Position numbers and translations under genes: made by a program
In this document: one piece after another, positions 5,017 to 57,496 of the stretch
Numbering within the stretch: position 1 is the first letter of the stretch
How the letters are laid out: every line of letters starts with the position of its first letter
Sequence record: MN794232.1
Length of the DNA stretch: 64,000 nucleotides
Direction: 5' to 3' (one strand)
Notes under the pieces: model-generated
Databases searched by the model: none
What the model was told of the DNA's origin: nothing
The model's input: the letters and a program-made list of their open reading frames with translations, nothing else

Positions 5017-5200
5017 ATTATACGACGAAAGTGCTATCTTCTAAACATGCACCAGGCATACTAGTTTCTCTAATATTTCTAATATCTCTAACTTCACTAA
5101 AACTACTAATACTACTAAGATGATGCCCAATTTTTGGGCCTCAAATCCAATCCTGCCGCTTCGCTCTAGATTCAGATACAAAAAAGCCCCGAAAGGGGCT
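5017..5200 (-). repeat. composite intergenic element copy 1 (terminator, GCGAAGC, hairpin, 7 TTAG/CTAG units at 9-bp period, GTTTAGA-17-TATAAT promoter)
   Basis: CTAG/CTAA on plus at 5061, 5070, 5079, 5088, 5097, 5106, 5115; similar to 31051-31220 and 57351-57496. Confidence 0.8.
5180..5200 (-). terminator. intrinsic terminator after gene 3
   Basis: AGCCCC-TTTC-GGGGCT followed by a T tract on the minus strand. Confidence 0.85.
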
Positions 5201-5212
5201 TATTGCTTTTTA

Positions 5213-5746
5213 CTAACCCATATAGGGTGTGATGACTTCTTCTTTGCCATCGACTTTATGGATCATTTCAAAGTACGAGTATTCAAACTCAACATCACAC
5301 GTTACAGTTTCAACATCACCTGCTTCAGTGTAGTTCCATTCAATAGCACTTAGAGACTTTGGAAACGCATTGACAAAGCGATACGTTGCAACAATCTTGT
5401 CTTTGTTATTGTCTAAAACATGAAGCAACATAGTAACTGGAACAATCCCGTCACTTGTACTAGCACCAGTTGGGTTATTCATAGTGATTAACCACTTGTA
5501 TAACTCAGCATACGTACGCATTTCTTCATCGACTAGAAACTGAATAGACAGGTCATCGTAAGATGTACCAGAACCTGCTACATGGTTGTTTGCTAGTTTG
5601 GCATACTTGGGACCTCGTGTAATACTTGCAATTTCCATATTAACACCCGGGATAGTGGCAGTTTGAATCTGCCACTGGAACGTTTGTGTTGCGTTATTAT
5701 CTGGGATGTCGATTCGGAAATTATTCTTCATCGTCAAGTTTTTCAT
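5213..5746 (-). CDS. 3: gp3 tail tube terminator / tail completion protein
   Basis: NNFRIDIPD, QTATIPGV, YDDLSIQFLVDEEMRTY, CDVEFEYSYF. Confidence 0.92.
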   Translation of the reverse strand: MKNLTMKNNFRIDIPDNNATQTFQWQIQTATIPGVNMEIASITRGPKYAKLANNHVAGSGTSYDDLSIQFLVDEEMRTYAELYKWLITMNNPTGASTSDGIVPVTMLLHVLDNNKDKIVATYRFVNAFPKSLSAIEWNYTEAGDVETVTCDVEFEYSYFEMIHKVDGKEEVITPYMG

Positions 5747-7716
5747 TAGTTCACGTTACCTCTTGTAGACGGGATCTTAGCTTCACCACTTGTAGTCAAT
5801 GGACGAGTGAAGTTGGTTGTATTTTGCACTGAGCTTACAGCGTTGTTGACGAAGTTCGTCCCAACTTCTTTTGTTTGCTGTGCTGCTCTGTATGCTGCTT
5901 CACGCGCTGCTACAGCTTCTAAGATTACTGAACGCTTAATCTCTTGGAATGGCTTAATCAAGCCCTCTTCAATCATGCGTTGTCTCTCAGCCGCAACAAT
6001 AGCGTCTTCTTGCATTTGCTTCTTCTCAACTTCAGCCGCTAGGAACTTGTCTAACGATTCGGTTGAACTTGCTAATGACTCGACAGGTCGTTTGATTGCA
6101 TCGGCAGCGTTCTTAGCACCGTCTATAACCGCTTGTGCTGTATTCTTAGCACCGTCTACGATCATATCCCCTGCTTTCCCTAGATAGTCAGTTTGATAGC
6201 GTGCATTGAGTCTGTCCTTGACTTCAGCCTTGCTTGCGTCAATACGCGCTCGGTTGCCTTCGATGTCTGCGCCAGCAATGAACTTCTCCATGCCTTCCGA
6301 CTTCAGAAAATCAGGTAGTGCATTTAATGCATTCACGACGAACTCTTTAACGTTTAACATTAGGTCATCTATTGCTAACATAAGAAGTCTGAATGAGTCA
6401 GGAATTGATAGCCAACTTGCAATGATCTTATTAACCGCATTGACATACATTTGAAACGCACTTCTAACGAAAGAAGTTACTTTCTCGAAGCCAGATACGA
6501 TTCCCTCAACTGCGCCTTCTGGTACAGCGTCTTTGATGTTTTCACCAACGATTCCAAACCATTCACCAATCCCTCGAACCATATCCGTGAACCAGTTCGA
6601 GATTATACTGAATAGCATTGCTCGTTTTTCGGGGTCGCTAAAAATGTTCTTCAGTGCGGCGAAGATTCTGTCTAGCTCTTCTTCGAAGATTTTGTAAATA
6701 CCATAACCTGCAACCATTGCAACTAGAGCCGCTGGGTTTAGCATTATCGCAACCATTCTACCTAGACCTAAGAATAATTGACGAACAACCGTCCACATCC
6801 ACCCTTTTATGGTGCCGCTCATATCAGTAGCAAGTGCTTGAACGATATTACCCGTTCCTTTACTGAACTTACCGAATCCTAGAAGAATGTTAGATGCGAT
6901 TTTCCCGAGTGTTCCGAATTTTGTTGCAGTCGAAGCAGCCATTGCCATTGATGTACTAAATGTCACCAATTGACCACCTAACATAACCAACCCAACACCG
7001 ACAAGTCTGAATAATTTAGCAATCCAGCCTAGTTTTTCGCCAGCAAGGTGATTCGCGATACGTCGCAGATCACTAGCTTGATTGCGCTGAACTTTCATAT
7101 TCTCTTTGTAGCGTAGTTGTTCAGTCTTACGATTGCGAGTTTCGGTAACTACTTGATACGCGAAAATCTTCTTGTACAATGCGCTTATAAAGCCCACAGT
7201 CAACGGGGCGTTATTACCTGCACCGTTCTGTAGGAAACTGTTTAAATCGTCGGCAGCCGTCTTCTGAAGCCCTATAACTCGCTTCATGTCGTTGACTCTA
7301 AAGATCAGACGTTCAAACCAACGATTAAAGCCCTCCTGCATACGTGCGAACTGCATTTTTGCAGTTAAGCGCATTTCTTGAATGCCACGATCAATACGAG
7401 ACAAATGTCCTTTAAAGTCAAGAGTAGTCTTGATAATATCCGTTAGTGATATAATCGAAGCACGAACTTTATTGGAAGTTTGCTCAAAGTTTTCGATAAC
7501 GCGCTGAAACAGATTCTTTTGCTGCGCCACCGCCTTTTCGTTTGTTTTAAACACCGACTGCATAGTTTCGAGCATAGACGTGGTCGTAATATCAATGTTG
7601 TTGATATGACGAGCGACACGCTGCATCGTATAAACTTCAGGTCGGTCTTCTTGTTGGAGAATGATATGATCTAATCTTCCGATTATCTCATTCATTTTCT
7701 TGTCGTCAGCCGCCAT
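5746..7716 (-). CDS. 29: gp29-like tape measure / baseplate hub protein (656 aa)
   Basis: Long helical protein with central hydrophobic Gly/Ala-rich segment, next to 51/26; assignment by composition and context. Confidence 0.65.
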   Translation of the reverse strand: MAADDKKMNEIIGRLDHIILQQEDRPEVYTMQRVARHINNIDITTTSMLETMQSVFKTNEKAVAQQKNLFQRVIENFEQTSNKVRASIISLTDIIKTTLDFKGHLSRIDRGIQEMRLTAKMQFARMQEGFNRWFERLIFRVNDMKRVIGLQKTAADDLNSFLQNGAGNNAPLTVGFISALYKKIFAYQVVTETRNRKTEQLRYKENMKVQRNQASDLRRIANHLAGEKLGWIAKLFRLVGVGLVMLGGQLVTFSTSMAMAASTATKFGTLGKIASNILLGFGKFSKGTGNIVQALATDMSGTIKGWMWTVVRQLFLGLGRMVAIMLNPAALVAMVAGYGIYKIFEEELDRIFAALKNIFSDPEKRAMLFSIISNWFTDMVRGIGEWFGIVGENIKDAVPEGAVEGIVSGFEKVTSFVRSAFQMYVNAVNKIIASWLSIPDSFRLLMLAIDDLMLNVKEFVVNALNALPDFLKSEGMEKFIAGADIEGNRARIDASKAEVKDRLNARYQTDYLGKAGDMIVDGAKNTAQAVIDGAKNAADAIKRPVESLASSTESLDKFLAAEVEKKQMQEDAIVAAERQRMIEEGLIKPFQEIKRSVILEAVAAREAAYRAAQQTKEVGTNFVNNAVSSVQNTTNFTRPLTTSGEAKIPSTRGNVN

Positions 7717-7883
7717 TATTGTTGTTCCTTATTCTTTTCTTGAATGTAATGTATAAGCTGTGCGGCATAGATTTCACGCTCGAATAGAACCATCGTTTCT
7801 AAGTCGTGAAGAGAAAAATTGCCATGAGTGATCATGGCAAAGTTTTCCTTGTAATACTCTTCAAGTGAGTATCTACCGAGCAT
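7716..7883 (-). CDS. 51: short-form gp51 baseplate hub assembly protein (55 aa; not in ORF track)
   Basis: MLGRYSLEEYYKENFAMITHGNFSLHDLETMVLFEREIYAAQL..., coupled TAATG to genes 26 and 29. Confidence 0.8.
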   Translation of the reverse strand: MLGRYSLEEYYKENFAMITHGNFSLHDLETMVLFEREIYAAQLIHYIQEKNKEQQ

Positions 7884-8731
7884 TATACGAAAAAATCTTC
7901 GATGCCTCTTAGCGTAACTTTCTCGTGATTACCACACTTAGGACATTTCACGTCAACGTATGTCGTGATGCGTGGAACTGAATCGACGAATGTCTGAACT
8001 TTTTTGAATGCTGCCGTATCAAGTTCGCCCATGATGTTCACAAGCTGCCCTTGCTCTTCAAGTTCTTCTTTGGTGTAAACAGTATCACCAACATGAACTT
8101 CTTTAATTGATTCAACCGCAATATTGAACAGACCTTGTGGTGTATTCGGGTCGTTGTTCTCATACACTCGAATTGTCGGGTGTTGGAGTTTGATAACAAC
8201 TTTTGGGTTGACTCGAACTGTATCTTCACCTGTAAATTCAGGCACGAACGCAGCTTTCAAGTCGATGTTGGTTCTGATACGTTCACCGCATAAGTGCTTC
8301 TCAGGTGCAAACACTGCTTCAATCGCTTCTTCGTTTGATTGATTCATAATCTCGGCAAAAATATCATCAGCAGATTTAGCCAGTTCAGCCTCTTCTTCCT
8401 CAGAAAGCTTTTGAAGTTCTTCTTCTGACTTCGGAGCACAGCAGTTGTATTCTGCTTGAATGTTAGTCACACCGTTACTGTTCATGTACATATGCAGAAA
8501 CAGATACTCAGAGTCACCAACCGTCAGGTCATCCATTTTGATGTCAGATACAATGCAGTTTTCAAGACACTGTTCGATTGCGTCAATCTTCTCATCAGAT
8601 TCATTTGCGATAAGCAATGCTTTATGCTCTTTTGCAAGCATTGCACGCAGTTTAATTTCTTCACCAGTTGATGGTAGTTTTACAGTATATTGTGGCGCAG
8701 CAAGTACGCTAATATCAAATGCTTTAGTCAT
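7883..8731 (-). CDS. 26: gp26 baseplate hub subunit
   Basis: PQYTVKLPSTGEEIKLRAMLAKEHK, GDSEYLFL, C-terminal CPKCG..LRGIEDFF. Confidence 0.9.
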   Translation of the reverse strand: MTKAFDISVLAAPQYTVKLPSTGEEIKLRAMLAKEHKALLIANESDEKIDAIEQCLENCIVSDIKMDDLTVGDSEYLFLHMYMNSNGVTNIQAEYNCCAPKSEEELQKLSEEEEAELAKSADDIFAEIMNQSNEEAIEAVFAPEKHLCGERIRTNIDLKAAFVPEFTGEDTVRVNPKVVIKLQHPTIRVYENNDPNTPQGLFNIAVESIKEVHVGDTVYTKEELEEQGQLVNIMGELDTAAFKKVQTFVDSVPRITTYVDVKCPKCGNHEKVTLRGIEDFFV

Positions 8732-8742
8732 GATGTTTTACC

Positions 8743-9489
8743 TTAGAATAGACCTGAAATGGCTTCAGCGCCTGTATTGAAAAAGCTGTTATATGTTTTC
8801 TCGAAGTTTTGAGTAATACCCAGTTTATCCGAGATTGTGCTTGATAGATCTTCAGTCATGTATGTTGCGCTTTCGTAAACAAACTCGACTTCGAATTCAG
8901 CCACTGCGTTGTTATTCTCGTATCCTAACTGAACCCCACCTACTCGAATCGGATACGCATTCTTCAAGCTAGTCATCGTAACCATTTCTGCGTTACGATT
9001 GTATGTGTAAATCTCAATTGTTCGAGCATAGTTCGAGAAGAAACCGACTTGAGCAGAATCATTTGAATAAATCTGCTTAAACCAACCAAGTAACATTTTA
9101 CGTTCTGGGTGTGTTGGTGACAGATACAATGACATGGTCACTGTTTCGTCGGTTTTCGCTTTTACTACGTGATGTGGCTTACGTCTAGTTTTATCTACGT
9201 CAGTTTCGTATGACGACCCTGGGATATTAACTGATTTCACCATCATTCCGATGTTTCGTTCGAACTCAAACCCCGAGCCGAAAAGAGAAGCAGTTGACGC
9301 AAGGGCATCTTGTACCCCTACGCCTTTGATGTCTGAAAAGTCAGCATTCAAAAATGACTCACCTGTATTCATCAACTGCTTTGCTGTATCTTGTAGCGAT
9401 GCAAATCGCACCGCATACAAGTTTTGTCTGGCTAAGTCGTTCTTTGTAATTTGAGATAAGAACTTCTTAACATCTATTCCGATTGCCAT
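8743..9489 (-). CDS. 54: gp54 baseplate tail tube initiator
   Basis: gp19-like fold motifs LARQNLYAVRF, VKSVNIPG, NAYPIRVGGVQL, FEVEFVY. Confidence 0.85.
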   Translation of the reverse strand: MAIGIDVKKFLSQITKNDLARQNLYAVRFASLQDTAKQLMNTGESFLNADFSDIKGVGVQDALASTASLFGSGFEFERNIGMMVKSVNIPGSSYETDVDKTRRKPHHVVKAKTDETVTMSLYLSPTHPERKMLLGWFKQIYSNDSAQVGFFSNYARTIEIYTYNRNAEMVTMTSLKNAYPIRVGGVQLGYENNNAVAEFEVEFVYESATYMTEDLSSTISDKLGITQNFEKTYNSFFNTGAEAISGLF

Positions 9490-9492
9490 TCG

Positions 9493-10089
9493 TTATCTCC
9501 TTCTATAACGATCATCGTAAGCACGAACAGCAGAAATGTTGCGACCATTTTTAGCAACGAATTGTTGCAATGGCATGTGAATAACGTTGTACCAGTCATG
9601 TGGCTTGACTTCTTCAAGCGACCCTTTAATTCGCTTGAGAATGTATAATTTCACCATATGTTTACTGAACTTGATGTTTTTCACTCGACCCCAATCGATC
9701 ATTAATCGTGTGGAGTTGCTCACTGTTTTCGTGTTAGCATATCTAAGTAATGTGGTTAAAAATTTCTCGCGATCTTTGGGTGGGATGTAATGCAAGTTCA
9801 AGCCTAGCATATAGCCTTTTTGTTGCCCCAAGCAGATGATGCACGGAAATTTATCCCAGTATGGTAACTGGTGTTTAGTTTTTGCGTCGTACGCGAAAAC
9901 ATACATGTTGCCTTTGTGAGGAACTTGCACTTTTCGACTACGAATTGCATCATGAACGCGCTTTTTGAACCACGCCAGTGATTTGCGCTGATTCTTTGCA
10001 ATTGGAGTACGACCAAGCTCGTGTGTTTGAGCCTTGAAGCTATCAAGAAGACTTTCTTTTTTCTTCTTTGCTCTTTCTGGTCTAGCCAT
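9493..10089 (-). CDS. 2: gp2 DNA end protector
   Basis: KSLAWF, YDAKTKHQLPYWDKFP, GLNLHYIPP. Confidence 0.93.
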   Translation of the reverse strand: MARPERAKKKKESLLDSFKAQTHELGRTPIAKNQRKSLAWFKKRVHDAIRSRKVQVPHKGNMYVFAYDAKTKHQLPYWDKFPCIICLGQQKGYMLGLNLHYIPPKDREKFLTTLLRYANTKTVSNSTRLMIDWGRVKNIKFSKHMVKLYILKRIKGSLEEVKPHDWYNVIHMPLQQFVAKNGRNISAVRAYDDRYRRR

Positions 10090-28054: not shown

Positions 28055-29592
28055 TGTCAGGAACAAACATATTCACGCACGCGAGTGACGAGGCAAAATA
28101 TGTTTACCTGCAACCGTTCACTTCTCCCGGTTCAGCTTTTGAAGCGGGAGGAGATGTTCAGAGTATTTTGGAGCAAATTGATCCAAGCGCATTGCTACCA
28201 CTGCCGCCGTTACCTTATGCAACTTCGACTGAGGACGGTGCAGTTGAGTACTCAACTCAAGCAGAAGCTAATGCACTTGATGATTTATTGACTGTTCTTA
28301 CACCCGAAACATTAGACGGTGTTGATCAGTTTGTATCACCAGCAACCGATACTCAGCTAGGTAACTTACTTGAATTACGTTCAAGTGATTTGACTCGAAC
28401 ATATGCATCATCAGATGCCAGTCGTTTGCTTTCATATCGTCGTCTTGAAGAAATGATGACGACTAGAAATGCACTTGCAGATGACACAACCAATGATTCT
28501 CAGGGGTTTGCTCAGTTTGCAACTCTAGCTGAATCATTAGCATACAACCCATCACGCATAATCTCGCCTATGCGAACTTGGAACTTGATTAAAAAAGAAA
28601 TTCCAAACCCATGGGCGCAAGCAACGGAGACATCAACTGGCGTTGTTAGAACAGTAGCACCGAGTGATTCATTGAAATCAGATGCTTCTATCGCGATTAG
28701 TGTTAAAGGTTTGAATCATGTGTCAGCGACAACTTCAAAGCGAGGTGCGTTTAAGTTAACACAAAACAACTATGACCGCAATGCAAGTGATGCAAACGAA
28801 TATGCAATAACTCCCGGTACGATTGATAATTTATTGGCAACGAGTGATAAGGTTGGATTCTTTCAACTTCCTGCTACGTTCACAAATGACTCAACTCAAG
28901 CAACTAGTGCGGCATTAGGCTACGAACTTGCAAGTAAACTGGGTCCAGATGGTGGTACGATTACAGGCACGCTTCAATGTGACAACATTTACAGTAATAT
29001 TGTCACGAGACAAAAGCAATACAGCTATGGCGGCTCATATTACGTTAATGTAAAAGAGACACGAGAAGTATTCCCGAATAATCAACTTGATGCTAAAATC
29101 GGATTAGCAGGTCGACCAGTCGGAAGTATTTTCCATTGTACTGAAAATGTAGACCCGAATGTTGTATTTGGTGGCGTGTGGTATAGAATCAGAGCAGGTC
29201 AAACAATGATCGGTCAAGGTACGGGTGATGATGGCGTGCGTCGTCGTTACTTCTCAGCCGGAACATATCGTGATGATGATCGAGTTACATTGTACGAACG
29301 TCATTTGCCTAGTCACAGTCACAAAAGCTGGGGTGAAACATACACAGGTTCGAAATCTTCATGTGTTAAGTACGGTACATATCGAAACCCGTACGGCGTG
29401 ACATATTACTGTAAAGAATACAGTTATGTTGATTACTGGCGATTCGGTTATACGGGTAGTCGGAATAATATAGGCATGGGTTCTACTGACCGAGATAATT
29501 ACATGTATTACACATCACCGGTAGGTGGCGGTCAAGCTCATGAAAACATGATGCCATTCTATCCCGTTTATATTTGGAGACGAGTTAAATGA
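28054..29592 (+). CDS. 12: gp12 short tail fibre, paralogue A (512 aa)
   Basis: NIFTHASDEAKYV, ATETSTGVVR fibre repeats, collar PVGSIF, HSH metal motif, C-terminal YIWRRVK. Confidence 0.8.
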   Translation: MSGTNIFTHASDEAKYVYLQPFTSPGSAFEAGGDVQSILEQIDPSALLPLPPLPYATSTEDGAVEYSTQAEANALDDLLTVLTPETLDGVDQFVSPATDTQLGNLLELRSSDLTRTYASSDASRLLSYRRLEEMMTTRNALADDTTNDSQGFAQFATLAESLAYNPSRIISPMRTWNLIKKEIPNPWAQATETSTGVVRTVAPSDSLKSDASIAISVKGLNHVSATTSKRGAFKLTQNNYDRNASDANEYAITPGTIDNLLATSDKVGFFQLPATFTNDSTQATSAALGYELASKLGPDGGTITGTLQCDNIYSNIVTRQKQYSYGGSYYVNVKETREVFPNNQLDAKIGLAGRPVGSIFHCTENVDPNVVFGGVWYRIRAGQTMIGQGTGDDGVRRRYFSAGTYRDDDRVTLYERHLPSHSHKSWGETYTGSKSSCVKYGTYRNPYGVTYYCKEYSYVDYWRFGYTGSRNNIGMGSTDRDNYMYYTSPVGGGQAHENMMPFYPVYIWRRVK

Positions 29593-31010
29593 GTAAAGGA
29601 ACTCAAATTTTCAATCACGTGATTGATGATGCGGGTACGGTTACAGTTGAAGTCGCTGGTACTGCCTTTGACGGGCAGACTGGCGGCAACGATGATCTTC
29701 AGACGTGCCTTGAATTGATTCAAGATCACGCTGTTCAGCCGTTACCTGATTACCCAGTCGCGTCAACGACTGTGGCTGGTATTACGAAATTAAGTGATGA
29801 AGCCGCTGTAGTTGATCCGCTAAACACAGATAGCGCGGTTACGCCAAGTTCGCTTGATTATTGGATGCAAAATCACGCAACCGCAACTGAATTGCAGTAT
29901 GGTTTCGTAAAGCTGATAACCGAAAGCACAATCGACACAGTAGCACCGTCAGACCCCGTAGAAGCTGCACAAAAGCACGCATTCACGTTAAAAACGCTGA
30001 ACTACGCTCTTAACACTCGATTTTACGCGACTGAATCTGATCCGGGTGCTGTGCGTCTCGCGACGAATGCGCAAGCAACGACAACAGGCACACTTTCAAC
30101 GACTGTAGCAATGACGCCGCAGCGAGTTAAAGAAATGCTTGACGTATGGGCAAACACAACTGCATCAGACGCATCCGAAACTACAAAGGGGTTGATTCGA
30201 CTAGCAAACGGGACTGAAGTCAACAGTACATTAGCGACTGAAGATAACTTGGCAATTTCGCCATATCGTTTTAACTTTAGAACAGCAACTACGACTCGTA
30301 AGGCAGGGTTTTATCTACCCGACGCTACAGTTGCCAACGCTCGTGCGTCGAACGAACATGCAGTTACAGTGGGCACATTGAATCTATTCAGTGCAAATAG
30401 TTCTCGTGTGGGTGTTGCTAAAATAGCAAACAATCTGACGACGAATGATCCGTTACAAGCTCTAAGCGCAGCAATGGGTTATAAGTTGAACAACGAGAAG
30501 ATTGGCGATGCAGGTGGTACAGTCACGGGTACTCTGAAGATCAACAATGTTCAGTCAGTTGGCGGAACTCAGTTGATGACTAATGGTCTAATTGAATCAC
30601 GAGCAATGCTTAATATGTATCCAGTCGGTTCAGTTTACATGTCGTTAGTATCAACATCACCTGCTACGCTTTTCGGCGGTACGTGGGCTAGATTAGCACA
30701 AGGTCGTGTTCTTGTTTCAGAGGGTTCATATGGCGGTCGAACTTTTGCAGTTCGTCAGACTGGCGGTGAGTATGAAGTTCAGTTAACCGAAGCAACAATA
30801 CCAGCTCATAAACACGCTGGTTGGGGTGAACATTACGACGGTAACGGTATCGGGTTTGGCGTTGCGAAGCAATACGGGCGTAATAACCCAGGTTCTCGTA
30901 GAACAGACAGTGACAACTATCTATACTACACATCACCGACCGGTGGTAACCAAGCACACAACAACGTACAGCCATACTATACTGTTTACATGTGGGAAAG
31001 AACTGCATAA
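29589..31010 (+). CDS. 12: gp12 short tail fibre, paralogue B (473 aa)
   Basis: ASTTVAGITKL/ASETTKGLIRL repeats, YPVGSVY, HKH, YMWERTA. Confidence 0.85.
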   Translation: MSKGTQIFNHVIDDAGTVTVEVAGTAFDGQTGGNDDLQTCLELIQDHAVQPLPDYPVASTTVAGITKLSDEAAVVDPLNTDSAVTPSSLDYWMQNHATATELQYGFVKLITESTIDTVAPSDPVEAAQKHAFTLKTLNYALNTRFYATESDPGAVRLATNAQATTTGTLSTTVAMTPQRVKEMLDVWANTTASDASETTKGLIRLANGTEVNSTLATEDNLAISPYRFNFRTATTTRKAGFYLPDATVANARASNEHAVTVGTLNLFSANSSRVGVAKIANNLTTNDPLQALSAAMGYKLNNEKIGDAGGTVTGTLKINNVQSVGGTQLMTNGLIESRAMLNMYPVGSVYMSLVSTSPATLFGGTWARLAQGRVLVSEGSYGGRTFAVRQTGGEYEVQLTEATIPAHKHAGWGEHYDGNGIGFGVAKQYGRNNPGSRRTDSDNYLYYTSPTGGNQAHNNVQPYYTVYMWERTA

Positions 31011-31050: not shown

Positions 31051-31220
31051 GGGTGAGATTGATTTCTCACCCTTTTTTGTATGAGCGAAGCGATAGAAAC
31101 GGATCGAGGCGGAAAAATTCCGCCTCATCTTAGTAGTATTAGTGGTTTTAGTGAAGTTAGAGATATTAGTATGATTAGTATTAAATACTTGTTTAAATCC
31201 ATGAATGTACCTGCTATTAT
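31051..31220 (+). repeat. composite intergenic element copy 2 (terminator, GCGAAGC, hairpin, 6 TTAG at 9-bp period, GTTTAAA-17-TATTAT)
   Basis: TTAG at 31130, 31139, 31148, 31157, 31166, 31175; hairpin GAGGCGGAAAAATTCCGCCTC. Confidence 0.8.
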
Positions 31221-31261
31221 AAACGCATAAAGACATCTCCCTCCTTGATCCTTTGTATTGC

Positions 31262-52213: not shown

Positions 52214-52227
52214 AACAGTTGGTTAAA

Positions 52228-52854
52228 TTAACCGTAGATTGCTTTGATGTTATCAAAGAATGCGCTTGATTTGTTCACTTTCGCAATGACATATCGAGCG
52301 TTAGTGCAAACTAGCGACTTAACATTGATGTTCTCTAGTTCAGATTTCGTTAGATTTGCGTTTTGCACAAGTGTTAGGATCTCACGAGCGTCGTCGCGTA
52401 GTGCAATAGATGCCAAATAACGAACCTGCTGCTTTGTTTCGAGATTCTTGAAGGCATCAATCGCATTCTGACCTGCGATAGCTACTGAAGCGCCTAGACC
52501 ACGATTCAGTGCGCGAGTCAAAAGCTTCTCAAGACCAACAATCGGGTTTCGCGGTGTTCCACGCTGTGGAATATCAACTGAAAGCTTACCACTGTTCTTC
52601 AGTGAGTATACGTGAACTTCTTTCGATCCGAACTTCTCAAAACGACATACGATAATCTCGTCTGATTTTTGAACGTTGTCTTGAACTCGACGGCGAAGTT
52701 GTTCGTTATATTCACCGCCATTCAGCGCATACACGATTTCAGCAACTGTTAGATCGCGTTTCGAAAGGAGTTCGATGATCGCAGGGCGAAAATTAGTACG
52801 GCTAACAGTTTCGTTGTTTGCTAGTGCTTTGCGTACGATTTCAATATTTTTCAT
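52228..52854 (-). CDS. hypothetical protein, possible N-terminal winged helix (208 aa)
   Basis: ORF track; IIELLSKRDLTVAEIVYAL pattern; GAGAG SD. Confidence 0.7.
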   Translation of the reverse strand: MKNIEIVRKALANNETVSRTNFRPAIIELLSKRDLTVAEIVYALNGGEYNEQLRRRVQDNVQKSDEIIVCRFEKFGSKEVHVYSLKNSGKLSVDIPQRGTPRNPIVGLEKLLTRALNRGLGASVAIAGQNAIDAFKNLETKQQVRYLASIALRDDAREILTLVQNANLTKSELENINVKSLVCTNARYVIAKVNKSSAFFDNIKAIYG

Positions 52855-52870
52855 GATATAATTCTCTCAA

Positions 52871-53146
52871 TTAAATTTGTTTTTCGACGGGAACTTGTGT
52901 TTCGTTGAAATACTTACCTGTATATTCAGTGTAAGCTTCGTGAAAGCTGTCAAGCTCATCATCTACAATAATCTGTTCGCCGGTTTCGAATGTATACATG
53001 ATACAATCATATAAACCCGTGGCAGCATTGTACATTGGTTCAGTTGTGAATCTCACACCGCACGGCGTGAAAAGCTCAATTCTGACTTCAGGGACTGGTA
53101 CTTGCTCTGCATTGTGTACTGCAAATGCTTGTTCTAATCTAGTCAT
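52871..53146 (-). CDS. hypothetical early protein (91 aa)
   Basis: GAGAG SD before MTRLEQ; TTGACC-type promoter upstream. Confidence 0.65.
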   Translation of the reverse strand: MTRLEQAFAVHNAEQVPVPEVRIELFTPCGVRFTTEPMYNAATGLYDCIMYTFETGEQIIVDDELDSFHEAYTEYTGKYFNETQVPVEKQI

Positions 53147-53207
53147 AATGTGCTCTCTGTATTGTCTCAACGAAAACAAGTTTAGGTCAAGACAATACTA
53201 ATGTCAA

Positions 53208-53696
53208 TTACTTTTTGCGCCATTTTGCAAGTTTTTCATCGTATTCACTGTGCTTCCACAAATCAAACACGATAGTACCGCTCTGAAACCACCACACAAG
53301 TGAGATTGTATCATTCAGCTTAGGATCTTTAGGGTTCTTTCCTAAGTAAAGCTCAGTACTCGGGTGCGAGTGGTAGATTGCTTTTTTGACAGCGAACTTA
53401 TATCCGCCTTCTGGCATACCAATTTCTTTCGGTGGGTAGATATTACCCAGATACGCTACTTGATATACTGTGTTTTTGAACACAACACGAGCCGAGTCAA
53501 TATTGAAAAGCAAGTTTTGATACTTAGCAGCATTCGGGGCAATCTTCCATTTATTCTTAGGCTTGGTTTCGAGTAGTTTATCAATCTCGGGTTCTGGTAT
53601 CAATTTACCGAGATTGTGATTTCCCCATTCTTCCTCAAGAGAAAGACTAATATGAATGCCGTAAAGCGTGTTTTCATATTCGTTAAATCGAAGCAT
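53208..53696 (-). CDS. hypothetical protein, putative internal head protein (162 aa)
   Basis: MLRFNEYE N-terminus; GAGGT SD; follows inh. Confidence 0.7.
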   Translation of the reverse strand: MLRFNEYENTLYGIHISLSLEEEWGNHNLGKLIPEPEIDKLLETKPKNKWKIAPNAAKYQNLLFNIDSARVVFKNTVYQVAYLGNIYPPKEIGMPEGGYKFAVKKAIYHSHPSTELYLGKNPKDPKLNDTISLVWWFQSGTIVFDLWKHSEYDEKLAKWRKK

Positions 53697-53700
53697 GTTG

Positions 53701-54207
53701 TTACCTCAGATAAGTGAAGCTATTTGAATTGCGTTCATGAACTAACAATTCACCGCGAAGCTTAACCCAATGTTCAATTGTCTTTAGATCGTGCGAGTCT
53801 CGACGACCGATGTGCCAATCATGAATGATTTCAGCCGATAACGGTTGATATAATTCATCACCGCGACGATATGTAGGCATCCATTTAGGTTTGAATTCAT
53901 CTTCGACCTTAATCGCATCAACTGGATCGACTAGAACTACGTCAACACGTTCTAAATGCTCGTGAGATTCAACGTCAACGAATTCAGTGTCTTTGGCATC
54001 TGATTCATCGACTAAATCACAACGAGTCTCAGAATCAATTACAGCGCATTCTAGCGGTACTTCGGTTTGAGATACGATTTCATGAGCGATAAGCTCTTCG
54101 ATCATTTTGCTCTTGGTAAGTGATTTGTCAAGTTCGATGTCATAATGTTTCAACGCGAATTCAGCGACACCTCGCTTAGTCTGTTTCTTTAGATATTCAG
54201 TAATCAT
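53701..54207 (-). CDS. inh: Inh prohead protease inhibitor, paralogue 2 (syntenic with uvsW)
   Basis: YDIELDKSLTKSKM and LKTIEHWVKLRGELLVHERNSNSF; AAGGA SD before MITEY. Confidence 0.8.
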   Translation of the reverse strand: MITEYLKKQTKRGVAEFALKHYDIELDKSLTKSKMIEELIAHEIVSQTEVPLECAVIDSETRCDLVDESDAKDTEFVDVESHEHLERVDVVLVDPVDAIKVEDEFKPKWMPTYRRGDELYQPLSAEIIHDWHIGRRDSHDLKTIEHWVKLRGELLVHERNSNSFTYLR

Positions 54208-54215
54208 ATTATTCC

Positions 54216-54422
54216 TTAGCAATTAATAGTGACCCATTCGTTTTGGTTCAAGTCAAAGAATGTCAGAGTATCGACACAACGTTCATTCTTCCTCATTTCT
54301 TCGCGATTCGTTTCAAGAACAGGCAAATAATGCTTGCACAATGTGGCGTGATATTGGCACCCGTCGCGTTCTAATTTAAGACATCCTTGTGTCATACAGG
54401 ACATCATTTCTTCTCGTGTCAT
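54216..54422 (-). CDS. small protein, possible WYL-like SH3 fold (68 aa)
   Basis: C-terminal FFDLNQNEWVTI; minus-strand TAAATA at 54454-54459. Confidence 0.6.
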   Translation of the reverse strand: MTREEMMSCMTQGCLKLERDGCQYHATLCKHYLPVLETNREEMRKNERCVDTLTFFDLNQNEWVTINC

Positions 54423-54435
54423 GATTTTAGACCTC

Positions 54436-54443
54436 TATAAATA
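54436..54443 (+). promoter_or_regulatory. late promoter for uvsW
   Basis: TATAAATA. Confidence 0.8.
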
Positions 54444-54485
54444 CAGTTATACATATTTAGACAAAACTCGCATAGAGAGAAAAAC

Positions 54486-56009
54486 ATGACAGATATTAAA
54501 ATTGAGTACTTCGATGAGAGTTATGCGAGAGTCGTAGCCGAGCCAAGCATTACTCATGAAATGATTGATTACTTTTCATTTCTAACTGACGGGTACAAAT
54601 TCAACCCTAAATTTAAAATGGGCATATGGGATGGCAAGATTCGACTAATGACGTATCAAGGTCTATTGCCATACGGTCTAGTCGGTCAAGCTAAAGCGTT
54701 TGCATCAAACATGATGTACACGATTGAAACTGATCCACTACTTGATCCGATTGAGAAAATTTCTCGTGAAGATTTTGAAGCATGGGTTGCTTCTCTTGAT
54801 ATTTACGGTGGCAGCAATAAAATTAGCCCGTACTGGTATCAAATGGATTCAGTATTTCACGGTATTAACAATCAGCACAGCCTTTTGAATCTACCAACAT
54901 CGGCGGGTAAATCGCTGATTCAGTCACTTTTGACACGTTGGTTTTTAGAAAATCACGAAGCTCAGAAAGTGTTGATTATCGTCCCAACAACTGCACTAGT
55001 TCAGCAAATGCGTGACGACTTTTTAGACTATCGCTTGTTTGAACACGGTGACATATATCAAATCCGAGGTGGCGTAGATAGAGACGCAATCGGAGATTGT
55101 CGTATTGTTGTTTCAACATGGCAATCGGCTGTTAAGCAAGATAAAGCATGGTTCGATCAGTTCGGTATGCTTCTAGTCGATGAATGTCACTTAGCAACGG
55201 GTAAGTCGCTTGACGGCATCATCAAAAAAATGACCAGTTGTGAATACAAAATCGGTCTTACTGGTTCACTTAGAGACGGTAAAGCTAATATTCTACAGTA
55301 CGTGGGTTCATTTGGTGATATTTTCAGACCTGTATCGACTGCACAGCTAATGGAAGAAGGGCAAGTAACTGATCTGAAGATCAATTGCTTGATGCTTGAA
55401 TATCCTCAGCCACTACGTGATGAAATGAAAGGCAGTTCATATCAAGAAGAAATGAAATTCATTCTTGAGAACAAACAGCGAAATCGTTACCTGATTAAGC
55501 TTGCTCATCATCTGAGTGCTAAGAAAGGCGAGAACACGCTATTACTGTTCAAGAACATCAAACATGGTAAATTGCTCTACGAAGCATTGAAGAAAGTCTA
55601 CGATCCTGAGAAAGTGTTCTACGTATCAGGTGAAACTAAGACTGACGACCGTACACATGTTAAGAAAATTGCAGAAGATATTGACGGGGCAGTTATTGTC
55701 GCATCATACGGTGTATTCTCGACTGGTATCAGTATCAAGAAACTACACAACGTAATTTTCGCACACCCGACAAAGAGTAAGATCATCAACTTACAGTCGA
55801 TTGGTCGTATTCTACGTAAGCACGGTTCGAAAGTTACTGCGAAGCTGTTTGACATTATCGACAACTTGGCGATCAAGCCGAAACGAGCTAACGCTAAGAA
55901 GCCGTATACGCATGTCAATTATACTATGAAGCATGGGATGCAGCGTATTGAGCTTTACAACCAAGAAGAGTTCAAGTACGCAGTCAAAAAAGTTGACCTT
56001 GCTGCATAA
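54486..56009 (+). CDS. uvsW: UvsW SF2 helicase
   Basis: PTSAGKS, VDECH, GLTGS, STGISIK, LQSIGRILR. Confidence 0.97.
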   Translation: MTDIKIEYFDESYARVVAEPSITHEMIDYFSFLTDGYKFNPKFKMGIWDGKIRLMTYQGLLPYGLVGQAKAFASNMMYTIETDPLLDPIEKISREDFEAWVASLDIYGGSNKISPYWYQMDSVFHGINNQHSLLNLPTSAGKSLIQSLLTRWFLENHEAQKVLIIVPTTALVQQMRDDFLDYRLFEHGDIYQIRGGVDRDAIGDCRIVVSTWQSAVKQDKAWFDQFGMLLVDECHLATGKSLDGIIKKMTSCEYKIGLTGSLRDGKANILQYVGSFGDIFRPVSTAQLMEEGQVTDLKINCLMLEYPQPLRDEMKGSSYQEEMKFILENKQRNRYLIKLAHHLSAKKGENTLLLFKNIKHGKLLYEALKKVYDPEKVFYVSGETKTDDRTHVKKIAEDIDGAVIVASYGVFSTGISIKKLHNVIFAHPTKSKIINLQSIGRILRKHGSKVTAKLFDIIDNLAIKPKRANAKKPYTHVNYTMKHGMQRIELYNQEEFKYAVKKVDLAA

Positions 56010-56017
56010 TAGATACG

Positions 56018-56045
56018 AAAAAGGGAGCAAATTGCTCCCTTTTTT
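56018..56045. terminator. bidirectional terminator
   Basis: AAAAAGGGAGCAA-A-TTGCTCCCTTTTTT. Confidence 0.85.
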
Positions 56046-56046
56046 A

Positions 56047-56157
56047 TTAGTCAGAAAAGATTGCCGAGAGAATCGCACCGATTAACTCGAACAGAAATTC
56101 AAATGGCGCCCAGAGCCAGTCGAAAAACCCACGATCTCGTTTACGATCTCTGCTCAT
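56047..56157 (-). CDS. 36-aa peptide, basic N-terminus then hydrophobic helix (not in ORF track)
   Basis: MSRDRKRDRGFFDWLWAPFEFLFELIGAILSAIFSD; AAGG SD; fills the gap before the terminator. Confidence 0.55.
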   Translation of the reverse strand: MSRDRKRDRGFFDWLWAPFEFLFELIGAILSAIFSD

Positions 56158-56161
56158 ACCT

Positions 56162-56332
56162 TTACCCGTTTAGAAGTTGTGTTTCGACAAGTTGCTGATC
56201 GCCGCCAGATTCAGAAATAGCCATTTCTGCTAGATGTTGCTGACATTGACCTGCGTGAACTGTGCCTTGTGGCGTATCAATCGTGACATCGCCTTCTTTG
56301 ATAGGTTGCTTGCATACAACACAATGTGCCAT
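56162..56332 (-). CDS. uvsY.-2: UvsY.-2-like small zinc-binding protein (56 aa)
   Basis: CVVCKQPI...GTVHAGQC...SES...ETQLL resembles T4 UvsY.-2. Confidence 0.75.
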   Translation of the reverse strand: MAHCVVCKQPIKEGDVTIDTPQGTVHAGQCQQHLAEMAISESGGDQQLVETQLLNG

Positions 56333-56505
56333 TAGTCTAACCCCGATTTTGTAAGTGATTGGTAGAGTGCGAAGTCGTTGACTTGCAATGAGCCATTCAA
56401 TTCCCACCCGTCGTTTAGTAGCTCTTGCACCTCTTCTTCGAATTCATCTGCGAACTCGTGACGCCGAGATACTACTTTGTATTTATGTCTAAGCCAGTTC
56501 TGCAT
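56332..56505 (-). CDS. DUF1737-like protein (57 aa; not in ORF track)
   Basis: YKVV...FEEEVQELLNDGWELNGS..YQSL; TAATG coupling. Confidence 0.6.
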   Translation of the reverse strand: MQNWLRHKYKVVSRRHEFADEFEEEVQELLNDGWELNGSLQVNDFALYQSLTKSGLD

Positions 56506-56506
56506 A

Positions 56507-56920
56507 CTACATACCTATTGCTAGTTTGAATAGAGCAGACGCTTTACCACCATCGAAAACTTTACCTGTAGCCTTTAGAGCGCCCATAAGTTTGCCCATA
56601 TCACGCATAGAATCTGCACCAGTCTCTAGCACGAAGTTAGAAACAAACGTGTCTAGATCTGAATCAGATATTTTTGCTGGTAGCAAAGACTCAAGAACAG
56701 CGTTTTCAGCGTTCAGGATGTCAACATGGTCGCCCTGTGCGTGTTCAAGTGCGAGTTTGTTGTTGTCGATTGCGCTTGAGATCACTTTGATGCAAGATTC
56801 ATCATCGTGTTTTTGACGACGGTCAAGTTCACCCATAATGACACCCAAGACAGACGCAACTGCGTTGTTGCGGTCTTTACGAGCTTGTAGGCGTGTTGCT
56901 TTGATTGTTTCGATGATCAT
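56507..56920 (-). CDS. GatB/YqeY-domain protein
   Basis: IKATRLQARK...ENAVLESLLP..DMGKLMGALK..FDGGKAS. Confidence 0.85.
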   Translation of the reverse strand: MIIETIKATRLQARKDRNNAVASVLGVIMGELDRRQKHDDESCIKVISSAIDNNKLALEHAQGDHVDILNAENAVLESLLPAKISDSDLDTFVSNFVLETGADSMRDMGKLMGALKATGKVFDGGKASALFKLAIGM

Positions 56921-57330
56921 ACTATACCACTCTCAATTTTTCTATTATCAATAATGTGTTTAATTGTGAAGCCCATTTGGCTAATGCCTTTCAAAGCTTC
57001 TTCGATGAAAGATAACACATCTTTCATGTGTTGAAAACGTGCAATCGCTAATTGAAGAGCTTCATCACCAGCGAGTGCGTATTTCATTTCACTTTTTTCA
57101 ACGATAAAATCACAAACTTCATCGTCATGCTTGCCGCTATAAAAGAGCCAGCGGTCTTTTCTCACTGCTTCCATTTTCATTTCAGCTTTAATAAGAAGCT
57201 GTCTTGCATCGGCTCTATATGCAAGCCACTTTGCATGAAGTACTGGGATTCGAATGGCTGCTGTTTCTAGTGCAGTCGTATCGATCTTAACGTCTTCATG
57301 GTATTCTGCTTTTAAATCTTGTAACTTCAT
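56917..57330 (-). CDS. uvsY: UvsY recombination mediator
   Basis: IDTTALE...LHAKWL..YSGK..GISQMGFTIKHII..RKIESG; GAGGG SD. Confidence 0.93.
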   Translation of the reverse strand: MKLQDLKAEYHEDVKIDTTALETAAIRIPVLHAKWLAYRADARQLLIKAEMKMEAVRKDRWLFYSGKHDDEVCDFIVEKSEMKYALAGDEALQLAIARFQHMKDVLSFIEEALKGISQMGFTIKHIIDNRKIESGIV

Positions 57331-57350
57331 ATAATACCCTCGCTTCATCA

Positions 57351-57496
57351 AGTATACATATCAAACGGGTTTTTGTAAACACGAATCTCACTAATACTTC
57401 TAATATCACTAAAAGCACTAATTCTACTAAGATGATGCGGAATTTTTCCGCCTCTTACCTTTTGCTTCGCGTATAAAAAAAGCCCCGAAGGGCTTT
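57351..57496 (-). repeat. composite intergenic element copy 3 (terminator, GCGAAGC, hairpin, 5 TTAG at 9-bp period, GTTTACA-17-TATACT uvsY promoter)
   Basis: CTAA on plus at 57391, 57400, 57409, 57418, 57427; hairpin GAGGCGGAAAAATTCCGCATC. Confidence 0.8.

Follow-up and report, generated by a model that had tools for sequence, protein, structure and literature searches.

The omega heptads and MetJ metboxes are tandem operator arrays of short units, and the Cox boxes of phage P2, six or more units of 9 bp, also occur in the satellite P4. Bacteriophage T4 has at least five replication origins; oriF and oriG each combine a promoter with an A+T-rich unwinding element some 100 bp long, oriE contains evenly spaced direct repeats and an early promoter, and plasmids bearing T4 origins replicate in infected cells (PMC3016281, in which recombination-dependent replication is also reviewed). 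PeSL and PmSL cassettes, described in nt-1 and KVP40, act as recombination substrates (PMC4122927). Here we describe a repeated intergenic element in a window of 64,000 nucleotides, the last 64 kb of Vibrio phage VH1_2019.

The same element, a non-coding module of roughly 90 bp, lies with its surroundings at 5017-5200 (minus strand), 31051-31220 (plus) and 57351-57496 (minus). An earlier note on this DNA had given these positions and the order terminator, GCGAAGC, hairpin GAGGC(SS)AAAAATT(SS)GC(M)TC, ATC, TTAG every 9 bp and G-TTTAnn-17-TAnnnT; direct reading and alignment confirmed both. Pattern searches of the 64 kb returned matches at these three places only, with none expected from 100 shuffles.

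In copy 1 (all features on the minus strand), an intrinsic terminator at 5175-5201, located by scan as a stem at 5184-5201 followed by a T run, ends the gp3 homologue and belongs to the context outside the conserved core. GCGAAGC follows at 5158-5164, inside AGAGCGAAGCGG, and then the hairpin GAGGCCCAAAAATTGGGCATC with ATC at 5119-5142, a CCC/GGG stem variant with a predicted RNA dG of -10.7 kcal/mol, whose stem is predicted in ssDNA as well. The array at 5056-5118 has six TTAG units and one CTAG in an exact 9-bp period. Beyond it the scan placed an early-type promoter, TTTAGA-17-TATAAT (5017-5045), again context, which drives the downstream gene 1 (dNMP kinase, 4342-4980), in synteny with KVP40. 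Copy 2, on the plus strand, begins after the gp12-2 homologue (29589-31010) with a contextual intrinsic terminator found by scan at 31051-31078, followed by GCGAAGC at 31085-31091, the hairpin GAGGCGGAA-AAA-TTCCGCCTC with ATC at 31106-31129 (a perfect 9-bp stem; RNA dG -15.8 kcal/mol, z -5.6) and six TTAG units with a 9-bp period at 31130-31183. The scan also found a promoter-like TTTAAA-17-TATTAT at 31192-31220, facing a non-coding stretch of about 40 bp that separates it from the wac late promoter (TATAAATA, 31262). A 49-aa ORF (31081-31230) crosses this copy; the records of VH1_2019, D480 and F86 annotate it as a hypothetical protein. In copy 3 (minus strand), a terminator-like hairpin, AAGCCC-TTCG-GGGCTT plus T7 (57475-57495), which was recognized by eye and not listed by the scan, stands directly 3′ of the gp35 stop codon as context. 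It is followed by GCGAAGC (57464-57470), the hairpin GAGGCGGAAAAATTCCGCATC with ATC (57431-57454; RNA dG -9.2 kcal/mol), an array of five TTAG units and one TTCG with a 9-bp period (57377-57430) and, by scan, an early-type promoter TTTACA-17-TATACT (57351-57379) that drives uvsY and is kept in phage 1.081.O. The 9-bp spacing reported earlier for five to seven TTAG units stands, with the refinement that copies 1, 2 and 3 read six plus CTAG, six, and five plus TTCG.

The conserved core is AAAAATTCCG(Y)(M)TCATC followed by (TTAGWRRWW)5-7, that is, five to seven 9-bp units arranged head to tail. AAAAATTCCG(Y)(M)TCATC adjoins the array and usually forms the 3′ arm and loop of a 6-9-bp hairpin. Stem variation includes a compensatory swap of CC/GG to GG/CC and G-U-compatible variants (CCGTCTC); in several island copies (described below) and one phage copy the stem is gone, with the 3′-arm sequence retained. 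GCGAAGC usually lies 25-75 bp upstream; four of the six KVP40 copies and all array-bearing islands have it on the same strand, at most 90 bp ahead of the array. TTAG is unchanged in 177 of 178 units, and positions 5-9 are limited to W-R-R-W-W. The top strand of the core is nearly free of C, which makes up 1.2% of the array top strand versus 20.5% genome-wide; within the window, the asymmetry of at most one C in 54 nt of the element strand is matched by arrays 1 and 2 only. Among 60-bp windows of the 64 kb, array 1 is the least stable duplex and array 2 ranks third (z about 4 for both), array 3 being seventeenth. Predictions for ssDNA show the array unstructured and the hairpin retained; for RNA, they show the array folding on itself through A-U and G-U pairs.

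These three copies are half of a six-copy set: the count of three in the earlier note is right for the window, but a wider motif search gave six per genome. In KVP40, VH7D and the divergent phage 1.081.O alike, the six intergenic positions are syntenic: the element precedes nrdH, KVP40_0136, a lipoprotein gene, gene 1, wac and uvsY. Six places are likewise found in nearly all full-genome-length Schizotequatrovirus and Mylasvirus records. The pattern matches 51 records in all, each a Vibrio phage. Searching one genome per species across 185,579 bacterial and archaeal species gave no match, and Rfam holds no family matching the element. Across genera, no presence/absence polymorphism was seen at the six sites, except for one local tandem duplication. 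Every copy is co-oriented with local genes, so that the orientation with local transcription first noted for the window extends to all six sites. Spacing is much more even than random: no two copies are closer than 26 kb in a genome of 245 kb (P about 0.006; for 1.081.O, 0.004). This evenness, like the constant orientation, represents one ancestral arrangement kept by synteny and not independent events. Between KVP40 and 1.081.O, identity is 71-100% in the core and 71-82% in the array, 51-64% in flanking intergenic DNA and 50-73% in the neighbouring, mostly coding, flanks. Copies within one genome are 86% identical and copies from different genomes 80%, orthologous and non-orthologous alike; the CCC/GGG hairpin variant occupies one locus in KVP40 and another in VH7D.

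The surroundings are less constant. Two of the six KVP40 copies have no terminator, one is followed by a TTGACA promoter and another by none, so the claim that terminator and promoter are integral to the cassette fails. An early-type promoter is present 13-33 bp beyond the element in four of the six copies. The lipoprotein copy sits in a tight intercistronic gap, overlapping the Shine-Dalgarno sequence and ATG in KVP40, VH7D and 1.081.O. The promoter described ahead of the wac late promoter is indeed seen in copy 2 but is not kept in 1.081.O, where the late promoter directly adjoins the element. Nor is the GTTTA type peculiar to the cassette: KVP40 has 22 strict matches versus 2.5 expected, 17 of them away from arrays, and this type is the general early class of the phage. 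Upstream terminator, GCGAAGC, full hairpin and downstream promoter are thus not obligatory.

The presence of the cassette in chromosomal islands of Vibrio and Photobacterium is a new finding. It occurs in nine of the 11 islands examined, 300-550 bp upstream of the island iterons and facing them, is absent from the other two, and is the sole DNA common to the phages and the island family. The islands have T4-type late promoters, iterons and a large serine recombinase; their core operons carry TATAAATA promoters, and a gene for a gp45-type clamp is present in one island. A long non-coding region holds the iterons, which adjoin a candidate initiator gene, and the islands also contain defence cargo. 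They encode a small protein similar to a portion of a helper lysis protein, and one of 95-99 aa that weakly resembles the TerS gp16 C-terminus. Promoter-like boxes leading to the iteron-adjacent ORF follow the cassette, and a further such box is found just upstream of it. Island cassettes match the locally circulating phage clade: the L151/L162 linker differs from that of D480 by one base, and three array units of L151 recur unchanged in F86. The islands look like satellites, putative parasites of these phages, and the TATAAATA late promoters, gp45-type clamp and shared TTAG cassette suggest that their presumed helper is T4-like. Because the islands have their own iterons and adjacent ORF, and two of 11 have no cassette, the cassette is not needed for the island replicon.

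The element is thus a cis-acting DNA site, specific to the phages, that occurs six times in each genome and is used in trans. Its retention at the same six sites in the phages and its copying by islands indicate that it is very probably a docking site for phage machinery. The earlier proposal, an iteron-type origin or the site of a middle-mode activator, is partly supported in that all findings fit one or the other. Our best reading, offered tentatively and at somewhat less than even confidence, is that the six copies are early replication origins. The TTAG units would be iterons for a sequence-specific, probably phage-encoded factor, and the array would also be the easily melted, strand-asymmetric stretch where the duplex opens. 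Opening may be helped by transcription entering from upstream or firing away from the downstream promoter, and the same transcription may provide RNA for priming, as happens at ori(uvsY) and ori(34) of T4. The helicase would be loaded on the structure-free, C-free displaced strand, with hairpins bounding its 5′ side, and the first fork would exit in the same sense as local transcription, and this would account for the constant orientation. In the putatively phage-dependent islands, the same cassette facing their own iteron replicon would let the phage machinery start island DNA synthesis, which in turn would load sliding clamps for the T4-type late promoters. What counts for origins is that one copy is directly upstream of uvsY, the position of T4 ori(uvsY), together with the six syntenic, evenly spaced and co-oriented sites, the conservation of core and array above that of their flanks, the strand asymmetry and low duplex stability of the arrays, the comparison with oriE, oriF and oriG, the island cassettes facing iterons, and the lack of matches in bacterial and archaeal genomes. 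Against them, four of the six copies have a strong terminator just upstream and their nearest promoter downstream of the array; the order terminator-array-promoter is the reverse of that in oriF and oriG, whose unwinding element comes after the promoter. Promoter regions, too, are often AT-rich and easily melted. Since T4 unwinding elements are sequence-independent and the sequence here is strictly kept, an initiator must be postulated; no initiator protein for the array was identified.

The T4 MotA box, like the TTAG unit, is 9 bp long, and the main rival to origins reads the array as an operator or enhancer on which a phage transcription factor acts, perhaps the functional MotA analogue of these AsiA-positive, MotA-negative phages; we consider this possible, if on balance unlikely. 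The factor would occupy the 9-bp units head to tail as monomers or dimers, with nucleation at the neighbouring TTCCGCATCATC, to activate or shut off the promoter just downstream, and islands would use the site to sense infection, much as P4 contains sites bound by regulators of its helper P2. KVP40-type phages have no recognisable MotA, as the earlier note stated, and an analogue has been suspected (Hinton 2010, PMC2988021); that they keep a true AsiA is borne out by a Pfam match in KVP40 (E 1e-49). The element is always upstream of the next gene and oriented with it, the early-type promoter after four of six copies has a -35 (GTTTAG/A/C) resembling the repeat unit, T4 has a MotA-dependent middle promoter before uvsY (PMC3016281), one of the array positions here, and the island cassette precedes promoter-like boxes directed toward the iteron-adjacent ORF. 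Yet a 245-kb genome has six such sites and 17 further GTTTA promoters with no array; one copy runs directly into a ribosome-binding site and ATG with no promoter, another stands before a consensus TTGACA promoter, for which no activator should be necessary, and the wac copy of 1.081.O abuts a late promoter. The distance from array to -35 varies, so that helical phase is not fixed, and regulation leaves the even genomic spacing and GCGAAGC unexplained. No candidate binding protein was found, the gene beside asiA having no detectable family.

Other explanations are less likely. The cassettes might be dispersed homology for T4-type recombination, hotspots or entry points for recombination-dependent replication and gene conversion: about 70-110 bp in islands would let phage ends invade and prime with no dedicated binding protein. 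T4 reportedly replicates plasmids that share homology with it, according to Kreuzer's plasmid work, and the greater identity within genomes (concerted evolution), the displaced CCC/GGG variant and the tracking of the local phage clade by island cassettes, as repeated conversion predicts, agree with this. It is nevertheless improbable, as homology alone does not account for an invariant TTAG in strict 9-bp phase across genera while spacers drift, nor for the C-free strand, constant orientation and six fixed sites, and direct repeats 26-54 kb apart should be costly in a highly recombinogenic phage unless otherwise selected. More doubtful still is action as RNA, in which a stem-loop and UUAG every 9 nt would be bound by a multimeric protein (compare TRAP, HutP and the gene 32 operator) controlling read-through, processing or translation. 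The element is always on the transcribed strand, its stem varies by compensatory and G-U-compatible changes and is stable as RNA, the last units of the intercistronic copy supply the Shine-Dalgarno sequence of the lipoprotein gene, and a promoter-like box lies just upstream of the island cassette. But in four of the six copies the element is set between a strong terminator directly upstream and the next promoter, and so would be missing from most transcripts; moreover, the stem is lost in several island copies and one phage copy with its 3′-arm sequence kept, Rfam offers no match, and the array is predicted to self-fold instead of forming a clean single-stranded platform. Packaging sites for a small terminase ring, one subunit per 9-bp unit, seem very unlikely. 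A satellite needs helper packaging and the cassette is its sole shared DNA, the 95-99-aa island protein is weakly like the TerS gp16 C-terminus, and an array of 54-63 bp could conceivably wrap part of a ring; however, the headful packaging of T4-type phages is regarded as independent of sequence, a set of six sites in both orientations with none near the terminase genes is unlike known pac arrangements, and two islands have no cassette. We give least credence to a passive or selfish repeat (PeSL-like or miniature mobile) or a small coding sequence. PeSL promoter/stem-loop cassettes are known in nt-1 and KVP40 (PMC4122927), and several GenBank records annotate the 49-aa ORF over copy 2, but the six sites are fixed and syntenic across genera, terminal inverted repeats and target duplications are absent, and the PeSL stem and hyperplastic-region location do not resemble this element; the other copies offer the ORF neither a start codon nor a conserved frame, their linkers differ in length, and TAG recurs every 9 nt in one frame of the array.

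Compared with known systems, early origins here would resemble the T4 R-loop origins ori(uvsY)/oriF and ori(34)/oriG in being about 100 bp long, A+T-rich, several per genome, intergenic or promoter-associated and oriented with transcription, with one copy at the uvsY promoter, and in being carried on foreign DNA (plasmids for T4, islands here). They differ in that the T4 origins share no motif and have a sequence-independent unwinding element downstream of a MotA-dependent promoter, whereas here one strictly conserved repeat is common to all six copies and precedes the nearest promoter, often following a terminator, in phages with no recognisable MotA. Iterons of the oriE type are likewise evenly spaced short direct repeats beside an early-type promoter and syntenic in relatives, their role in T4 being equally unproven (PMC3016281); but iteron systems have a period of 12 or about 22 bp and one cluster per genome, versus 9 bp and six identical clusters here, with no adjacent initiator gene such as repEB or plasmid Rep. 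The PeSL and PmSL cassettes of T4-like phages (Arbiol 2010; Comeau 2014, PMC4122927) are also repeated intergenic modules of stem-loop and early promoter, yet they have an A3-4G3-loop-C3T3-4 terminator stem, no TTAG array and many indel-associated copies in hyperplastic regions, in contrast to the six fixed sites of the TTAG cassette, most of which fall in the conserved core. The islands share with PLE of Vibrio cholerae, the ICP1 satellite, a large serine recombinase, defence cargo, a long iteron-bearing non-coding region with a candidate initiator gene and a lysis-protein-like small protein, although the gene families differ and the islands' presumed helper is T4-like. Finally, P2 Cox boxes, omega heptads and MetJ metboxes are, like these five to seven units, short head-to-tail arrays by promoters, and P2 and P4 offer the parallel of a helper-phage site copied by a satellite; their unit sequences are unrelated, and they lack the even genome-wide placement and the GCGAAGC/hairpin of the TTAG cassette.

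The earlier note had described the cassette at three places, and it is present at all of them: copy 1 at the gene 1 site (5017-5200, minus strand), copy 2 at the wac site (31051-31220, plus strand) and copy 3 at the uvsY site (57351-57496, minus strand). Read strand-specifically, the three share one order of parts: an intrinsic terminator, GCGAAGC, a GC-stemmed hairpin with an A-rich loop, ATC, TTAG units every 9 bp, and G-TTTAnn-17-TAnnnT. They can be aligned over ~130 columns, with a long invariant run from the hairpin to the fifth TTAG. Patterns of four TTAG units (one mismatch allowed) and of hairpin-ATC-TTAG (three mismatches allowed) each matched only these three copies in the 64 kb and yielded zero matches in shuffled sequences. 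By a consensus scan, all three copies have promoter-like sites, and copies 1 and 2 have terminators; the copy 3 terminator, unlisted by the scan, is clear by eye.

The window is identical to the end 64 kb of VH1_2019, a KVP40-like Schizotequatrovirus, and the count of three gives way to six when the whole KVP40 genome is searched for the motif. Three of the six precede nrdH, KVP40_0136 (an ORF heading a block that includes a DNA methylase and rIIA/B) and lipoprotein gene 0252; the others correspond to the copies of the window, copy 1 lying between genes 3 and 1, copy 2 between 12-2 and wac, and copy 3 between 35 and uvsY. A 125-bp query from copy 2 matched 51 phage records, all Vibrio phages of the KVP40-like group, and nearly all full-length genomes among them had six places each. 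This BLAST place count is the copy number for most phages; KVP40 and 1.081.O were read whole, and VH7D at all six loci. VH7D carries six copies (IMG/VR). The divergent phage 1.081.O has seven at the same six sites, the whole cassette at its gene 1 site being duplicated in tandem ~160 bp apart (L138:1490-1790), and its nrdH copy (position 63982) contains an internal duplication of three units (27 bp). These whole-unit duplications indicate that arrays change and grow by whole units. The wac-site element also occurs in nt-1, from another genus (Mylasvirus), and in D480 and F86. Searched with the specific pattern, IMG/VR returned KVP40 and VH7D only; a loose pattern of five TTAG units retrieved mostly giant-virus contigs unrelated to the cassette.

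As the earlier note had seen for its three copies, all copies run in the direction of the genes around them. On the KVP40 map, the gaps between copies are 43, 50, 54, 26, 28, and 42 kb. A minimum gap that large is improbable for six random points (P ~0.006 for KVP40 and 0.004 for 1.081.O), with the even spacing counting as a single inherited arrangement rather than repeated evidence.

Across the six KVP40 copies and their orthologues, what stays constant is AAAAATTCCG(Y)(M)TCATC (or the CCC/GGG variant of it) and, after it, 5 to 7 units. Among 178 units from 30 copies (flanking degenerate units uncounted), the 9-bp period is exact and positions 1 to 4 read TTAG in 177. Position 5 is T or A in 95% and position 6 is A or G in 98%; position 7 is mostly a purine, and A or T predominates at positions 8 and 9. 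Cytosine makes up 1.2% of the array top strand versus 20.5% genome-wide, and a 54-nt stretch with at most one C and at least ten G occurs nowhere in the window but in arrays 1 and 2. Between KVP40 and 1.081.O, identity is 71 to 100% in the 24-nt core and 71 to 82% in the array, compared with 51 to 64% in the linker and downstream DNA and 50 to 73% in the neighboring, mostly coding flanks. Judged from these alignments, selection between genomes holds TTAG, its phase and the purine/W pattern. Identity is 86% among the copies of one genome and 80% between orthologous copies of different genomes, as it is between nonorthologous ones (80%); this greater likeness within genomes shows that the copies evolve in concert by gene conversion.

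The hairpin is best formed in copy 2, where a perfect 9-bp stem closes an AAA loop (RNA ΔG −15.8 kcal/mol, z −5.6). Nearly all phage copies retain the upper 6 bp, and the lower stem tolerates G-A, G-T, and C-T. One double compensatory swap, GCGG/CCGC to GCCC/GGGC, is present in KVP40 at the gene 1 site and in VH7D both there and at the 0136 site; its distribution indicates a single event that conversion carried to other loci. In the nrdH copy of 1.081.O and several island copies the 5′ arm, and hence the stem, is destroyed while the 3′-arm sequence is kept, so the structure appears favored but dispensable. From this comparison, the feature that is always kept is the sequence adjoining the array, not the stem.

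The outer parts are less constant. The terminator and the GTTTA promoter had both been assigned to the cassette, and each accompanies four of the six KVP40 copies and is lacking at two. Where the upstream terminator is missing, the upstream ORF ends inside or just before the cassette. GCGAAGC lies on the same strand, at most 90 bp upstream, at 4/6 KVP40 arrays, a placement far beyond chance even though the 7-mer is 3.3-fold over-represented in that genome (60 versus 18). Downstream of one KVP40 copy, at the KVP40_0136 site, the promoter is TTGACA-17-TACTAT; the lipoprotein-gene copy has no promoter, and its final units extend into the Shine–Dalgarno sequence and the ATG. The wac copy of 1.081.O has no early-type promoter, and a late promoter lies ~25 bp away. 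A late promoter is not a constant partner, since only two of the six sites have TATAAATA within 350 bp. Nor does the GTTTA promoter type belong specially to the cassette, as had been thought: G-TTTAnn-N17-TA[TC][AT][AC]T has 22 strict matches in KVP40 (2.5 expected), 17 of them far from any array. The class is an ordinary T4-like early promoter of the phage, which the KVP40 genome paper reportedly did not identify.

The genes beside the six copies are nrdH, an acidic ORF with the methylase, a lipoprotein gene, a dNMP kinase gene, wac and uvsY. None encodes an initiator, and a search among the other phage genes examined identified no candidate. The acidic ORF downstream of the 79-kb cassette, KVP40_0136 (L002:29375-29902 in KVP40), is conserved, very acidic, 175 aa long and unannotated in RefSeq; it stands behind the consensus TTGACA-17-TACTAT promoter, ahead of the DNA methylase, and is placed like an early antirestriction gene.

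The arrays are among the most easily melted DNA of the window. When 60-bp duplex windows were ranked by stability across the 64 kb, arrays 1 and 2 were the least and third least stable (z ~4) and array 3 came 17th; at these ranks, the arrays offer the A+T-rich, easily unwound stretch of ~50 bp that is expected of the T4 origins oriF, or ori(uvsY), and oriG, or ori(34).

A pattern covering all phage variants had no match in one genome each of 185,579 prokaryotic species, which rejects a host binding site. Metagenomes gave six matches, two in KVP40-like phages and four in a different element, a chromosomal island of Vibrio and Photobacterium. We sampled eleven loci of this family (L150:4100-17300 and loci L147, L146, L144, L151, L152, L153, and L159-L162). 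At one end the islands carry a large serine recombinase; they also have a small resolvase, conserved small ORFs and variable cargo (among it Thoeris, restriction-modification, ParA and VapE), and a T4-type late promoter, TATAAATA, stands ahead of each core operon. A noncoding region of ~1 kb contains the TTAG cassette and a cluster of 6 to 7 iterons, next to an ORF of 325 to 382 aa for which we found no known family; several GCGAAGC and GAA-loop hairpins are present as well. By blastn, the cassette is the sole DNA common to three island loci and KVP40 or 1.081.O, the island cassette matching KVP40 over 67 to 74 bp at 94 to 97% identity. It is present in 9 of the 11 islands, always pointing at the iterons; the other two lack the whole ~200 bp module. 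The promoter-like boxes of the islands are absent from the phages.

By host group, each island cassette matches the corresponding phage clade. KVP40-type units occur in islands of the Harveyi clade and of V. cholerae, the linker GCGAAGCGAAAGAATGGACGAG is common to D480 and the V. cyclitrophicus and Photobacterium islands, and three consecutive array units are common to F86 and a V. cyclitrophicus island (L151). The islands are distinct from PICMI, whose helper size and core genes differ, and we found no description of them in the literature as satellites of T4-like phages. From their gene and promoter content, they look like undescribed satellites of T4-like vibriophages.

A few island proteins can be linked to phage proteins, two of them weakly. 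In one island, the cargo includes a protein bearing the gp45 sliding-clamp C-terminal domain of T4, PF09116 (L153:13476-14225, minus strand). In another, a 77-aa protein (L150:13277-13510, minus strand) resembles the N-terminal transmembrane/coiled part of KVP40.0297 (29% over 69 aa, pairwise E 3e-9), and the neighboring 99-aa protein (L150:13503-13802, minus strand) has a weak likeness to the C terminus of the gp16 small terminase, TerS (38% over 39 aa). In public run X1, a KVP40-like phage is represented by a 57-kb contig at depth 37, and the island-type cassette flank (aligned to L127:900-980) by a 960-bp contig at depth 6.4, so phage and island DNA co-occur in one sample. The small public runs examined as Logan contigs had an even, DNA-like depth and carried no transcript signal.

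The cassette is a conserved, phage-specific cis element in six copies, with a sequence-constrained 9-bp repeat, constant orientation, even dispersal and easy melting, and on sequence evidence it has been captured by islands that look phage-dependent. Conservation, orientation, dispersal, melting and capture together point to a site used by something supplied in trans during infection. The process is less certain. We tentatively place first, at somewhat under an even chance, the reading of the cassette as a candidate replication origin. This reading alone accounts for the even spacing; it also matches the position of T4 oriF at uvsY, agrees with how many origins a T4-like genome is expected to have, draws on iteron-like repeats and the most meltable DNA of the region, and supplies what an island with late promoters would need, clamp loading on the same DNA being required in T4 late transcription. 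A factor would bind the TTAG units, the duplex would open within the array, hairpins would form on the displaced C-free strand, and helicase loading would send the first fork in the direction of transcription.

The main rival, which we consider rather unlikely, makes the cassette an operator or enhancer that serves a suspected MotA analog of these AsiA-positive phages. At T4 oriF, origin and promoter-activation roles coincide, so the origin and operator readings may both hold here. The mechanism of middle-mode transcription in AsiA-positive phages without MotA is open (PMC2988021), and the gene beside asiA, a candidate for the analog, gave no lead in Pfam, PDB sequences or the Atlas. Also adjoining asiA, KVP40.0296 (L004:10076-10372) encodes a Tad2-like anti-Thoeris protein (Pfam E 9e-26), and Thoeris is among the cargo of several islands that have the cassette. 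That the copies serve as recombination homology is improbable, and an RNA element slightly more so: the array is predicted to fold on itself as RNA through A-U and G-U pairs and to be unstructured as single-stranded DNA, and no described RNA family (Rfam 15) applies, copy 2 reaching a best E of ~0.8, far below threshold, and the window yielding only three hits, all tRNA. Two of the sequences called tRNA by Rfam (519-631 and 2185-2301, minus strand; 113 and 117 nt) are uncalled by ARAGORN; both fall in the tRNA region of the window, for which the KVP40 record annotates over-long pseudo-tRNAs of 113 to 124 nt, which may be tRNA genes with insertions. A packaging site is very improbable, and a passive repeat or small ORF the least probable of all; the latter is rejected as an ORF by the absence of a conserved start or frame. 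The records of VH1_2019, D480, and F86 annotate a 49-aa ORF across copy 2 (31081-31230, plus strand) as a hypothetical protein, probably spuriously because no other copy keeps a start codon or frame.

Phage and island observations can be joined in one reading, possible but doubtful, in which the TTAG cassette would be a portable, phage-specified start signal bound by a phage factor, and PLE-like Vibrio/Photobacterium islands would have captured it for use with a T4-type helper. T4 late transcription needs clamps loaded on the same DNA molecule (PMC3016281). The helper would melt and replicate the DNA of the island and load gp45 clamps there, thereby turning on its TATAAATA late promoters. That Vibrio islands with T4-type late promoters have copied the same 70 to 110 bp is independent evolutionary evidence of use in trans.

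If the origin reading is true, the cassette would be the first sequence motif common to all origins of a T4-like phage, and the islands, if satellites, the first known for T4-like phages. The six identical, short and easily mutated candidate sites, in a large and ecologically important group of vibriophages, make the origin and MotA-less middle-mode questions directly testable. The capture points to unrecognized hitch-hikers on T4-like phages with defense cargo (Thoeris, restriction-modification), which would bear on the use of KVP40-like phages in phage therapy and aquaculture.

The cassette goes without mention in the PeSL, phiGrn1/phiSt2, 2025 ISME J Schizotequatrovirus, and PICMI papers. 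PeSL/PmSL elements consist of an A3-4G3-loop-C3T3-4 stem directly upstream of TTGYVH-N17-TAWWAT and occur in many copies, in hyperplastic regions and linked to indels; the cassette differs in stem sequence and in its six fixed syntenic sites, and the published description has no TTAG array. A MotA-dependent middle promoter has the box (a/t)3TGCTT(t/c)A 11 to 13 bp upstream of the −10 element, as in T4 uvsY, AATGCTTCA-N12-TATAAT. The cassette is not of this type: it has no MotA box, and in copy 3 the array is followed by TTTACA-17-TATACT. Upstream of uvsY, neither T4 nor Aeromonas phage phiWae14 showed an analogous array. Aeromonas phages 65 and Aeh1 share the AsiA-positive, MotA-negative state.

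T4 has been the model of multi-origin phage replication for 40 years; its origins have no common motif, and the role of the iterons of oriE is undefined (PMC3016281). At T4 oriF and oriG, the transcript of a phage-activated middle-mode promoter enters the unwinding element. In the cassette, by contrast, four of six copies have a terminator upstream and their nearest promoter downstream, and one has no promoter. Because the cassette is sequence-specific and the order of promoter and meltable stretch differs, we do not file it under the oriF/oriG family. Iteron-type origins have a cognate repeat-binding initiator, usually encoded nearby; what the cassette shares with them is a cluster of direct repeats at even spacing, each built on a conserved core.
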